Below, piece by piece: positions 49,401 to 55,400 of a stretch of 64,000 bases of DNA. The notes below the pieces were generated by a model. It had not been told where the DNA came from, made no database searches, and saw nothing but the letters and a program-made list of their open reading frames with translations. Source of the DNA: Tubulanus polymorphus (Eukaryota; Animalia; Nemertea); NCBI RefSeq assembly GCF_964204645.1, contig NC_134036.1:558001-622000 (forward strand). The letters run 5' to 3'. The stretch's first letter is position 1. Every line of letters starts with the position of its first letter. Both the position numbers and the translations under genes were made by a program.

Positions 49401-52400
49401 TCACGCGAGCACGATTCAGAACATTCGAACGGCCGTCGGTAACTTCTTAGAACCGAGTCCGATCGCCATCGCCTTGGATACGAAAGGTCCCGAAATCCGA
49501 ACCGGTCTCATCAAAGGGGTATGTTTACATTGTTAAAACGTCTGAAGACAGCTGGTGTTGTACGTGTAATAACTCCACTCTGATTCGTCAGTTTATATTG
49601 TATCGTTGCTAACCGACCAATAAGATTTGTATGTTTATACACAGAGTGGAACCGGCGAAGTGGAACTGGTAAAAGGAGCGACCTTGACCCTATCAACGGA
49701 TGACAAGTTTAAAGATAATTGCGATGAGAACACGGTGTGGGTCGATTATAAGAATATCACCAAGGTGATGTCAGTCGGAGGACGAGTTTATATCGACGAC
49801 GGTCTCATCTCGTGTTGCGTACAGGAAATAGGTACGTCAGGGGAGGGTGTACAGGAAATAGATACATCAGGGGAGGGTGTACAGGAGATAAGTACATCAG
49901 GGGAAGGAGTACAGGAGATTGTACATCAGGGGAGGGTGTACAGGAGATAGTACATCAGGGGAGGGTGTAAAGATGGCTCAAAATGTTCTGTTTAAGTTTG
50001 TGAAAAACCCTTCTGCATTTTAACATATTTGAGATATCGTTGTGCAATGTTTGATATATTATGATTTTCAGGTGACACGTATTTGAAATGTGAAATTGAG
50101 AACGGAGGCAGTCTGGGAAGCAGGAAGGGAGTCAATTTACCGGGTACGGCCGTCGATTTGCCGCCCGTTTCAAAGAAAGACGAAGAAGATTTGAAATTCG
50201 GCGTTGAACAAGGGGTCAGTTTTCACAATAGTATACGTTTGATCAGAAATCAACAAACTTTACCCATAAATTGATTGTCTACAGTTAAAACGGAGTCAGT
50301 TGACTTATTGAGGTAATGGTCGATATTTCGATATTTTAGGTTGATATTATCTTCGCGTCGTTTATTCGTAACGCCGCGGCGATCAAGACAATCAAAGCGT
50401 TACTCGGCGAAAAGGGAAAAAATATCAAAATTATCGCGAAAATCGAAAATCACGAAGGCGTCTACAAGTAAGTCCGAGATAATTTCTATTAAAAAATAGC
50501 TTCCTTAGAGAATAGAATGAAGAGTTCGATTTCTATTAGAAAATAGTTTCCTTAGAGAATTGAATAAAAAGTTAAATTTCTATTAGAAAATAGTTTCCCT
50601 TAGAGAATTGAATAAGAAGTTAAGCTTCTATTAAAAAAGTTAAAAATATTTCTCGCCCCGTGAAGTTTTAAACCGTGTTTATTCGTTTGTTCAGTTATGA
50701 CGAAATCCTCGAAGCGGCGGACGGAATTATGGTTGCCCGCGGTGATTTGGGAATCGAGATCCCGGCGGAGAAAGTGTTCCTCGCTCAGAAGATGATGATT
50801 GGACGAGCGAACCGAGCCGGTAAACCGGTCATCTGCGCTACCCAGGTAACGAAAACAATTCGAAAAAATTTTTGTAAGATCTTTAATCGTATCGTTACCA
50901 CGGTAATAACTGACGTCGATTGTTACGACAGATGTTGGAGTCGATGATTACGAAACCTCGACCGACCAGAGCGGAGACCAGCGACGTCGCTAACGCTGTC
51001 CTAGATGGCGCTGACTGCGTGATGTTGTCGGGAGAAACGGCTAAAGGTCTTTATCCGCTGGAAGCTTTGAAAATCATGCATAAGGTTCGTTAAATTTAGT
51101 TTTAATTGAAAAAGAAAATGGCGGTAAATTTTTATTGTCTCTTTACGTTATAACTAGTACGATATCTTTATCAATCTTCAGATTTCAGGTCAAGGTCGTC
51201 GTCATGTTCCATCGGATTTATTTCTAAAATAGAAACATCCAAATATATTTCAGGAGTTCATTAATATTTCGTGAAGATTTATCTTAAATTTTTATTATTA
51301 AGTTTTTGAGCTTAGCATGAATTCCATGAGTTTTAGAGTTGATCAGTAGACATTTCGCTATGCATGTCCATCTGATATAGCCCTGCTTTGAAAATGATTT
51401 TAATTTGCAAATCACCCGACCATCACTGACTTGTATTTTGCATATTCTATCCAAATTAGTCTCAGTTGTCCAATCATATTTCAAGATTTATTTGTACCGT
51501 TGAGTTTTGCATATTTTACTAAATTATCCTAAATTCATCTGATCATCCGTCGAGATGCTGAGTTTTGCATATTTTATTCAAATTAGTCTATACTAACTGA
51601 TCGTCCAATCCCGCGCAACGATTTTTCAAACTAACCAATCGCGTATTACAGATCTGTCGCGAGGCTGAAGCCGCCGTCTATCACAAGATGTTATTCGAAG
51701 ACCTGCGTACGGAGGCCCCGACCCCGACTGATATGACTCATACGACCGCCATTGCTGCCGTTGAGGCGTCTATTCAGTGTCGAGCTGCAGCTATCTGTTG
51801 TATTACAACAACAGGAAGGTATGAGTGATATATATATTGTGGTTTATCGTCGTAGTGATGATGGTGGTGGACAATTCTAGATGATTATTTTTCTTTTCTC
51901 TGTCCATCCCGACCTTTTCTTTCCCCGATTCCCAAATAATCTTTCATGTTTCAGCGTGAATTTTATTCATGATATCAAATTTTTCTATTATTTTCAGGTA
52001 AACTAGGATTTTATGAAAGAACACAGGCTGCCAACTGCAAACTGATAATCAGTAGTTTCTTACTGAACTATAGCCATATCTATATATTACATTGATTTTG
52101 AGTAAAGGCAAACTGTATCAGAGACTAAAGTGAGGAATTTATTAGGCACTATTCAAAAATTTTGATTTAGTTTGGTTCCTCTATTCAACCTACTGAAGAA
52201 TTACTAAGTCACTGCTGATAATTTGAACTGATAGGTTGGCAGCCCTGTTCAAGGAGTTCACTAGGAAAGCTTATTTATGATAACTAACTACTTTCTATTT
52301 GTATTTCTCTTTAGATAAAGATGTCATGATAGACTGATTCAACCCTGACTCTATTCAATGCCTTAGTTGTTTGCCAACTATTCAATTCAATAGTTTGTTT

Positions 52401-55400
52401 ATGAATTGGTCAAAAGGTCACAAGCCATGTGCTTAGTATTTGCAAGCTTATTTCTGATTGGCTGGCCTGTTGCTGGGTGGGATGTCACTGGTCACCTGAC
52501 CTAGGGTAAGGGTTAGCTGCTAGTCAGGAGTGACTGTGATGTCACTGGTCACCTGACCTAGGGTTAGGGTTAGCTGCTGGTCGGGAGTGACTGTGATGTC
52601 ACTGGTCACCTGACCTAGGGTTAGGGTTAGCTGCTAGTCAGGAGTGACTGTGATGTCACCTGACCTAGGGTTAGGGTTAGCTGCTGGTCGGGAGTGACTG
52701 TGATGTCACTGGTCACCTGACCTAGGGTTAGGGTTAGCTGCTGGTCAGGAGTGACTGTGATGTCACTGGTCACCTGACCTAGGGTTAGGGTTAGCTGCTG
52801 GTCAGCAGTGACTGTGATGTCACTGGTCACCTGACCTAGGGTTAGGGTTAGCTGTTAGTCAGGAGTGACTGTGATGTCACTGGTCACCTGACCTAGGGTT
52901 AGGGTTAGCTGCTGGTCAGGAGTGACTGTGATGTCACTGGTCACCTGACCTAGGGTTAGGGTTAGCTGCTGGTCAGCAGTGACTGTGATGTCACTGGTCA
53001 CCTGACCTAGGGTTAGGGTTAGCTGTTAGTCAGGAGTGACTGTGATGTCACTGGTCACCTGACCTAGGGTTAGGGTTAGCTGCTGGTCAGGAGTGACTCT
53101 GATGTCACTGGTTACCTGATCTAGGGCTAGAGTTAGATGCTAGTTATGAATGCCTCTGATGTCACTGGTCACCTGACCTAGTGAATGAGCAATTCTTTCA
53201 TTAAAACTAATCTATTAAAATACTATTTTACTCTTTCTAATACATAGACTTGAGCTCATTTTGCAGATACAATTATCAATAAAACTCCTGGTGGTGAAGG
53301 GATAATAATGAATATATATTGCATGAGAATTTTCAGTTGAGGTCATTAACATCAAGGCAACAATTGAATCAGTTACTTTTTAAATGCTGAATATTTGAGA
53401 ACAATTGAATCAGTCATTTTTTGAATGCTGAATATTTGAGACAACAATTGAAGCAGCTATTTTTTAAATGCTGAATATTTGGACAACAATTGAATCAGTT
53501 ATTTTTTAAATGTTGAATATTTGAGACAACAATTGAAGCAGTTATTTTATTGAATTTTGAATATTTGAGACTACAATTGAATCAGTTATGATGGTGTGTT
53601 TATAGATGTGTCTTCAGGCGGCGGCCGCGATGTACGATCGTATGAGATTCAGCGATCTGTTGAAAGATACCGCGGTCCCGATCAGGGATATGTCTCGCGT
53701 TACGTCCCTCGCCGCGGTCCAAGCCAGTTTCATGTGCAACGCTAGTTGTATATTCTGTCTCACGACGACCGGACGGTTCGTTCTGTTCTATTTACGCATG
53801 TCATCATCGATGCAAGCGCCACCTGTCGTTATAATCATGTAGTACTTTCAATTCCCAGTAGATGGTGTGCTCTGTCATGAGACGAATGGCTCAGCATTGT
53901 TATTGTTGTTGCTGTTGTTGCTATATGGCTGTCGCTATGGTTCTTGAAGCGAGCTGTGATAGATCCTCCTCGTAGATTTTACCCCTCCACAATCATCCGC
54001 TTGATAATAAAAACACCGCTAAAAACCACCGTAAGATCGCATTATCATCAGTAGTAGCTCGAATTAATAGTTTATCCGGCTGTTTATAGATGGCGCGTCA
54101 AGCGGCGGCAGCGATGTACGATCGTCAACGTTTCAGCGATTTGATCAAAGATTCGAAAGTGCCGATCACCGACATGTCACGCGTGACCTCACTCGCCGCA
54201 GTACAAGCGAGCTTCATGTGCAACGCTAGTTGCATATTCTGCGTGACGACCACCGGACGGTAGGACTACAACGACGCATGGCGCCATCTACTGGCCATAA
54301 ACAGTATCATTAACGAATGACGGCCTGTATAGAGATATGTATAGAAAATGTTCTTTCTAATGAGTTTGTTTTACAGCTATTACTCACTCGCCACTAGAGG
54401 CTGAAAGCTTGCCCTGGCAAGCGCGGTAGAAATCTCATGAGATGAAATAGTTTACGCTTTAGCTTGTAGAAGTAGCGTGGATGAATAGCTGCGTCGTAAC
54501 CTACTAAAGATATTTATTATCGCTATTAGTTACTAGCTGGTTATTATTGTTGTATGTAAATTAAATTTATGCAGATGTGTAACCAATCAGAGGCAGCGTT
54601 CGCGTATTTGACGCGTTACGATGATTTGACGAGGGAATTACATAAACCGGTGACCGATCTGGCGGAGATTATCGCTATCTCAACGGTTCAGGCCAGTTAC
54701 GTATGTAACGCTAGTACTATTGTATGCGTAACATACACGGGAAAGTAAGTCTCACTGTGATCCCATACAGGGTCCCTACAACTCCTTAATTCCTAAAAAA
54801 ACTACTTCATAAGCGCTTGAAACTCCTTTGATTCGAGGAAAAATCTCAGAAACGCCTTTAAGACTCCTTCCATTTTGAGAAACAGGCGATTAGATACCTT
54901 AGAAGTTGTACATTAGACTGATTCGGTACTGATTGTCACTCTATTAAGAGGTTTACGAGTTTAGTTAGTTTCAAGGGATAAATATTTGCTTCACTAAACC
55001 ACTGAATTAATGGTTTACCGAGATAAACTATACCAAATCTTTTGTAATAGGTATTTGGAAATGGCGCAGACACTTTCTTCTCTGAAATTGAGATTTTCTC
55101 CTTTAAAACTCCTTGCATCAGGAATGACCGATCTGTAGGGACCCTGTCACATGTCCGTCCGTCTGATTTGTCCTGTCTACCCTTCACATGGGAAATATAA
55201 CTGCCGATCTGGGTTCAGTTGCAGTTAGATTTTGAAGTATTGGTTACTAAATTCTAACCTTAAGGCCTGGCTTTATATGCGAATGGTTAATGAATTACAT
55301 GGTTAAAATTGGTCTATAAAGCAAGTTCGTCTATCTACCAGTGGCTGCAGTTGCTCAGAAATTTGTAAGAGTTAACAGTGGATAGTTGACAACAAAATTA

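Follow-up and report, generated by a model that had tools for sequence, protein, structure and literature searches.

A 64,000-nt stretch of the Tubulanus polymorphus genome (contig NC_134036.1, positions 558,001 to 622,000; hereafter the window, numbered from its first base) contains a pyruvate kinase (PK) gene in which four paralogous exons, here called A, B, C, and D, follow one another on the plus strand at the place where vertebrate PKM carries its two alternative exons 9 and 10. We consider it likely that these exons form a four-member mutually exclusive cluster in a single PK gene, that the cluster originated when the counterpart of PKM exons 9/10 was duplicated in tandem, and that it gives rise to four isoforms. 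One gene would then probably yield four enzymes differing in subunit contacts and in regulation by sugar phosphates. The PKM1/PKM2 swap is among the best-studied splicing controls of metabolism and is usually seen as a two-state vertebrate invention. The four alternative exons and the constitutive exons that flank them are as follows.

50932..51084, plus strand: upstream constitutive PK exon, matching PF00224 at model positions 282-327; ends in KIMHK, phase 0, with donor GTTCGT.
51652..51818, plus strand: alternative exon A, the canonical version, 167 nt, equivalent to PKM residues 381-435, with a TTTG(R) loop.
53606..53775, plus strand: alternative exon B, 170 nt, one codon longer in the loop that follows the first helix and with a TTTG(R) loop.
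54090..54259, plus strand: alternative exon C, sister to B, 170 nt, with a TTTG(R) loop.
54575..54744, plus strand: alternative exon D, the most diverged, 170 nt, with a TYTG(K) loop and donor GTAAGT, the best among the four.
56046..56164, plus strand: downstream constitutive exon, matching PF02887 at model positions 27-68; starts with (R/K)SAHLI, the candidate 3' end near 56164 being taken from a GTACGT donor.

Each alternative exon has AG directly before it and GT directly after it, runs from phase 0 to phase 2, and is free of stops in the frame of the upstream exon, a property of 0.05% of 168-nt windows in the introns of this gene when read in a given frame. Reading and translating the sequence confirmed to the base the positions, lengths, AG/GT boundaries, and phase that a sequence-only reading had proposed for four intact exons. 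The terminal two bases of A, B, C, and D are AG, CG, CG, and AA, respectively, and with the G at 56046 they make an Arg or Lys codon before SAHLI; thus the first base of the downstream exon completes a split codon that fits whichever alternative exon is chosen. Searches of the window by tblastn with the four peptides returned exactly four copies of the exon, with pairwise peptide E-values among A–D of 1e-8 to 1e-29. GC content is 46-55% in the exons, lowest in D among the four, and 31-42% in the introns, and the introns that separate the alternative exons are 314-1787 nt long. Neighbouring position, similar length, same phase, homology, and intact splice sites are the sequence features that define mutually exclusive exons in the work of Pillmann, Hatje, and Kollmar; A–D are adjacent, measure 167, 170, 170, and 170 nt, share their phase, are homologous to one another, and are bounded by AG and GT.

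The array lies between the last exon that matches PF00224 and the first that matches PF02887. All matches to these families in the window are on the plus strand and above the cut-off, with seven exon matches to PF00224 (window 48788-51066) and two to PF02887 (56044-56175 and 59335-59478). Across the 268-Mb genome, Pfam PK and PK_C matches are confined to this locus, which indicates that it is the single PK gene of the organism, and with Pfam PK matches at this locus alone, the genome holds no processed PK pseudogene that would record a spliced form.

The arrangement of reading frames allows one exon at a time. A script that checked the 16 possible inclusion patterns found an open frame in the four single inclusions only; the other 12 patterns (none of the exons, any two, any three, or all four) reached a stop. 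Inclusion of all four preserves the downstream frame by its length, yet a stop occurs a few codons past the first exon–exon joint. The earlier claim that skipping all of the exons or including two or three of them would shift the frame is in keeping with this result. We infer actual splicing of A–D, a regulated choice among them, and biochemical differences between their products. Exclusivity would follow at a minimum from the reading frame, as the length of each exon is 2 mod 3: a transcript with none or more than one of the exons would carry a premature stop and presumably be removed by nonsense-mediated decay, a form of surveillance that would serve as the minimal mechanism. A mature mRNA should then contain one of A–D and no more than one. 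Tissue- or state-specific splicing regulators, and not docking and selector RNA of the Dscam kind, would presumably select the exon.

Two other mechanisms of exclusivity were considered. Steric hindrance between splice sites is ruled out by the 314-1787 nt that separate the alternative exons, and a Dscam-type docking/selector system is not supported by a search of the introns for k-mers and their complements: no k-mer of at least 9 nt was common to at least three array introns, and no docking-like k-mer of at least 9 nt had complements in at least three introns.

We also asked whether the array could be an artefact of assembly, for example through the collapse or expansion of haplotypes or the faulty joining of a duplicate gene. 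The introns hold tandem repeats (units of 57 and 43 nt) and a high-copy element, all of which can mislead assemblers. Three public runs from one study, however, contain the region as unspliced DNA contigs that include introns; in one independent run, B, C, and D all fall within a single short-read contig of 1221 nt (53573-54801), and in a second sample the three exons and their introns are likewise covered by contigs. Thus, short-read contigs from two samples reproduce both the exons and the flanking introns, and B–D are contiguous on independent DNA. In addition, B, C, and D differ from one another at 21-46% of nucleotides and so are not allelic copies, and the genome has no second PK locus from which a duplicate could have been joined. 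We therefore regard an assembly artefact as extremely improbable. Alternative joints in the three DNA runs occur in repeats only, with no exon–exon joints. Within the exons of the array, samples differ at one position only: an independent run has T>C at 53749 in exon B, a synonymous change (Cys, TGT>TGC) to the state found in exon C. About 16 intronic differences occur across the stretch.

Comparison with proteins of known structure places the array at PKM exons 9/10. In phmmer searches of Protein Data Bank (PDB) chains, A matched PKLR with an E-value of 5e-15, B matched PKLR at 1.7e-6, and D gave its best match, at 4.5e-3, to M1-type muscle PK chains; all three matches fall at PKM residues 381/383-435 or the equivalent PKLR residues, and C is placed by its 86% identity to B. 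Residues 1-55 of A align without gaps to PKM 381-435 in the same phase, and the split Arg codon corresponds to R436. That the array occupies the position of the vertebrate alternative exons, as first suggested from the letters of the window, is borne out by this end-to-end correspondence. The nearest relatives of A are single-copy invertebrate exons that are at most 73% identical to it.

In human PKM2, the site for fructose-1,6-bisphosphate (FBP) comprises residues 431-437, 482, 489, and 513-522; the region encoded by exon 10 lies at the A-A and C-C interfaces, where helices 391-401 and 407-423 form the C-C contact; R399, E396, and E418 take part in an inter-subunit salt-bridge network; and FBP allostery is lost in R399E and H391Y variants and upon acetylation or mutation of K433 (PMC6420622). 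We mapped these residues onto the array by the gap-free alignment of A and by HMMER alignments of B and D, with the register of B, C, and D around 399-401 uncertain by one residue owing to their extra codon. In PKM numbering, the exons read as follows.

Exon A: His at 391, Glu at 396, Arg at 399, Glu at 418; loop TTTGR, as in mammalian PKLR.
Exon B: Asp at 391, Ser at 396, Leu at 399, Gln at 418, Asn at 424; loop TTTGR.
Exon C: Asp at 391, Ser at 396, Ile at 399, Gln at 418, Asn at 424; loop TTTGR.
Exon D: Tyr at 391, Asp at 396, Thr at 399, Gln at 418, Asn at 424; loop TYTGK, with Tyr at the position of K433 in M2 and E433 in M1 and Lys at the position of R436.

The alignment bears out the expectation that the exons would differ at residues of the PKM2 C-C interface and FBP loop. 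Exons B, C, and D replace both partners of the R399–E418 salt bridge, and this joint loss suggests a rewired dimer–dimer contact; D, judged by its residues, should also differ in effector binding. In the protein, the exon accounts for the last part of the A domain and the opening helices and strand of the C domain, elements that form the C-C (dimer–dimer) interface and part of the FBP loop. Inclusion of A would give a canonical, PKLR-like enzyme that is probably responsive to FBP, inclusion of B or C would give enzymes with a rewired C-C interface and Asp in place of H391, and inclusion of D would additionally change the FBP loop to TYTGK.

The divergence among the copies carries a strong signature of constraint. 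B and C are identical at 134 of 170 nucleotides and at 48 of 56 amino acids (86%), and 17 of the 25 codons that differ do so synonymously. By the Nei-Gojobori method, the proportion of synonymous differences (pS) is 0.59, corresponding to a synonymous distance (dS) of ~1.15, and the proportion of nonsynonymous differences (pN) is 0.11, corresponding to a nonsynonymous distance (dN) of ~0.12, for a dN/dS of 0.10; nonsynonymous changes make up 14 of 36, compared to the 78% expected under neutrality (binomial P = 5e-7). Purifying selection, which had been proposed from the synonymous differences between B and C, is thus upheld by a ratio that is far from 1. With dS near 1, a single freely drifting copy would by itself have added a dN of ~0.5, and therefore both B and C must have been constrained. 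The 150 nt on each side of B, C, and D show similarity at background level and could not be aligned, indicating that the likeness of the exons is old and maintained and does not result from recent copying.

Exon D is more distant, with dN of ~0.5 relative to B and C and saturated dS; among the copies as a whole, dS ranges from 1.15 to >2. Despite this divergence, D retains an open frame, a splice site at either end, and the split codon with which it closes, and it matches the consensus of other species more often at conserved columns (12 of 19) than at variable ones (10 of 36; Fisher p 0.012). Exon A matches 19 of 19 conserved columns of the exons of other species. Twenty-two positions are invariant across B, C, and D, and the three share derived states at otherwise conserved PK columns (M1, Q4, Q418, and an S after N424). 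That such shared derived states have persisted over saturated synonymous divergence suggests that B, C, and D have a separate role under maintenance and are not decaying.

Several observations weigh against a cluster of four functional exons. Of 19 columns with a conservation of 80% or more among other PKs, B, C, and D each miss 7, which could mean that constraint was relaxed in the ancestor of the three. Compared to metazoan donors in general, those of B (GTTCGT) and C (GTAGGA) are weak; the constitutive upstream exon has the same GTTCGT donor as B. The array introns yielded no conserved intronic regulatory element. Among public runs, none with RNA was found to contain the locus in a search with a 5.3-kb, mostly intronic stretch, a query that may hide smaller RNA runs. 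A B/C/D profile run against 1.84 billion representative proteins gave 66 hits, all of them ordinary PK exon fragments and none of the B/C/D type; exon B had no match among the short proteins of a 5.8-billion set; and the B/C/D profile had no match in JGI metagenome contigs. In a control search with exon A, the species itself was absent from the protein collections, the best hit being 71% identical and from Protopolystoma, a monogenean flatworm; because of this absence, the blank protein searches for B, C, and D carry little weight.

Some of these points would also fit a history in which at least one of B, C, and D has become a silent pseudo-exon, a relic of tandem duplication that is no longer spliced, leaving one to three isoforms. 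The weak donors of B and C, the position of D on a very long branch and its low GC content, and the fact that the public runs containing the locus are DNA are all compatible with relics. With dS of 1.15 to >2, however, none of the copies has lost its frame, either of its splice sites, or the split codon at its end; the conservation between B and C requires that both were constrained; and D, the most diverged copy, has the best donor and departs from other PKs preferentially at variable columns. On this evidence we regard the presence of a silent relic among the three as unlikely.

A further explanation supposes that A alone is productive and that inclusion of B, C, or D creates frame-shifted or stop-containing transcripts whose decay tunes the level of PK mRNA. 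Any second exon does give a premature stop, the collections searched (in whose protein sets the species itself is absent) returned no protein or transcript containing B, C, or D, and these exons deviate at 7 of 19 conserved columns. A poison exon, however, needs neither an open frame nor conservation of amino acids, whereas B, C, and D are all open against the 0.05% background, the deficit of nonsynonymous changes between B and C is strong, and the three exons keep the signature of the PK fold together with a T-x-T-G end and a split Arg/Lys codon that fits the downstream exon. Unproductive splicing thus seems to us very unlikely.

The origin of the cluster was examined with a tree of homologous exons based on 55 columns, in which no M1-type exon was included. 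B and C formed a clade with support of 100/96, and D joined them with support of 93/83 in a long-stemmed group in which the branch to D was very long (1.3 substitutions per site). Exon A fell among ordinary invertebrate exons, and the backbone was unresolved with 55 columns; constraining A–D to one clade gave p 0.33 in the approximately unbiased (AU) test, so a single origin was not rejected. The data are compatible with an independent expansion of the exon in an invertebrate lineage. The candidate M1-type sequence that was left out of the tree (P0005) is a 97-aa database fragment in which an M1-type PKM exon continues directly into an M2-type one, as expected for a product of double inclusion; it looks mammalian and is possibly human.

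We also examined the genomic contigs behind seven database hits. Five carry a single copy of the exon: Heterobilharzia americana (L001) and those designated L005, L006, L011, and L012. The contig designated L002 (ctg28223l of ENA assembly ERZ25069853, 103 kb, from a eukaryote) instead holds three tandem copies between an exon encoding GETAKG...H(R/K) and the downstream exon, at the following positions.

8399-8565 of the L002 contig: exon copy, 167 nt, with AG/GT sites.
9430-9596 of the L002 contig: exon copy, 167 nt, with AG/GT sites.
10250-10416 of the L002 contig: exon copy, 167 nt, with AG/GT sites.

These copies are mutually diverged, with pN of 0.27-0.34 and pS of 0.57-0.82. R399 is kept in all three and E418 in two of the three; the middle copy is the most divergent, with Gly at the E418 position and an LSRSG loop. 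In the tree the three L002 copies formed a clade of their own (97/75), apart from the exons of the window, which indicates a separate expansion and shows that duplication of this exon recurs. The array described here is therefore not unique in kind. Like A–D, the L002 array consists of tandem copies of the homologous exon with AG/GT boundaries, read from genomic DNA; it differs in having three copies, all of 167 nt, compared to four of 167, 170, 170, and 170 nt here.

Of the known systems, PKM exons 9/10 come closest. Exon A belongs to the same gene family and is the same exon, in agreement with them both in length (167 nt) and in phase (0 to 2); A–D share with exons 9/10 the frame-based bar on double inclusion and skipping; and the encoded elements, helices of the C-C interface and the FBP loop at 431-437, are the same (PMC6420622). 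The vertebrate gene, however, has two members, compared to four here, three of them with an extra codon. Moreover, orthology of B, C, and D to M1 or M2 is improbable, as they form their own clade in a tree that lacks an M1-type exon, and the combined loss of R399 and E418 and the Tyr at 433 are states not seen in the M1, M2, L, or R forms of the PDB alignments. Choice between the PKM exons is controlled by PTB, hnRNP A1/A2, and SRSF3. Mammalian PKLR is the form closest to exon A (E 5e-15, with the same TTTGR loop and the AEAAVYH motif), and B also scores best to PKLR. The isoforms of PKLR differ at the N-terminus through alternative promoters, and we know of no alternative versions of this exon in that gene.

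The arthropod clusters of Dscam, Mhc, and 14-3-3 zeta likewise consist of three or more paralogous exons in tandem, identical in phase and nearly so in length, with a single member expected in any one transcript. They originated through the duplication of exons in tandem (Hatje et al., 2017; PMC5740500), as we propose for A–D. In contrast to clusters of the Dscam type, no docking/selector architecture was found here, and the frame alone forbids multiple inclusion. The telomeric repeats of the genome described here are TTAGGG and not TTAGG, which sets the organism apart from arthropods and also from nematodes. Some exons seem predisposed to duplication, and a few clusters are common to human and fly (Hatje et al., 2017; PMC5740500); the PK array adds a case to the argument that certain exons are prone to tandem duplication. 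In our searches of the full-text literature, no PK exon array was described for a non-vertebrate, in agreement with the earlier statement that no four-exon PK array was known. A Daphnia PK-like gene in which exon 9 is skipped under copper is not an array.

A wider proposal, which we put forward tentatively and consider somewhat doubtful, is that animals have, on several separate occasions, made this PK exon an exchangeable module that sets the C-C interface and the FBP loop. In the gene described here it would act as a four-state switch: B, C, and D subunits would form tetramers by another contact code, might not co-assemble with A-type subunits, and might be uncoupled from activation by FBP, and D would carry a further altered effector loop (Tyr433 and Lys436). 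Evolution would in that case have arrived by convergence at a natural equivalent of the PKM1/PKM2 switch with a richer set of states. Independently of this wider proposal, a four-state array in this gene and a separate three-state array in L002 would mark the exon as a recurrent evolutionary handle on the allostery and oligomerisation of PK, and the array would offer natural variants with coordinated changes at R399–E418 and at position 433.

The introns of the array contain repeats of three kinds. In the intron between A and B, 52481-53181 is a 57-nt minisatellite of 12.4 copies with 92% matches, which contains CCTAGGGTTAGGGTTAGC; read contigs include copy-number variants of it (joints skipping 82 and 588 nt), and the very high word depth of its unit indicates that the unit is repeated elsewhere in the genome. 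Closer to exon B, 53358-53589 is a 43-nt tandem repeat of 5.4 copies that ends 16 nt upstream of the exon. About 20 nt of its units are complementary (at most 18 of 20) to 55996-56015, a segment ~30 nt upstream of the downstream constitutive acceptor that overlaps a TTAAC branch-point-like motif, and pairing between the two would loop out B–D. The predicted duplex has an energy of -30 kcal/mol, a value matched by 3 of 100 shuffles; its significance is marginal, and we treat it as a lead only. In the intron after D, 54767-55147 has 28-nt terminal inverted repeats (82% complementary) that enclose ~325 nt, with a word depth of ~4200 compared to ~25 nearby and many alternative joints; it looks like a high-copy element resembling a miniature inverted-repeat transposable element (MITE).

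Elsewhere in the window, two further features were recorded.

7232-10165, plus strand: open reading frame of 977 aa, the longest in the window, with no Pfam match.
16371-16937, minus strand: open reading frame fragment with a match to the trichohyalin-plectin-homology domain (TPH, PF13868; E 2.6e-9), presumably an exon of a neighbouring minus-strand gene.

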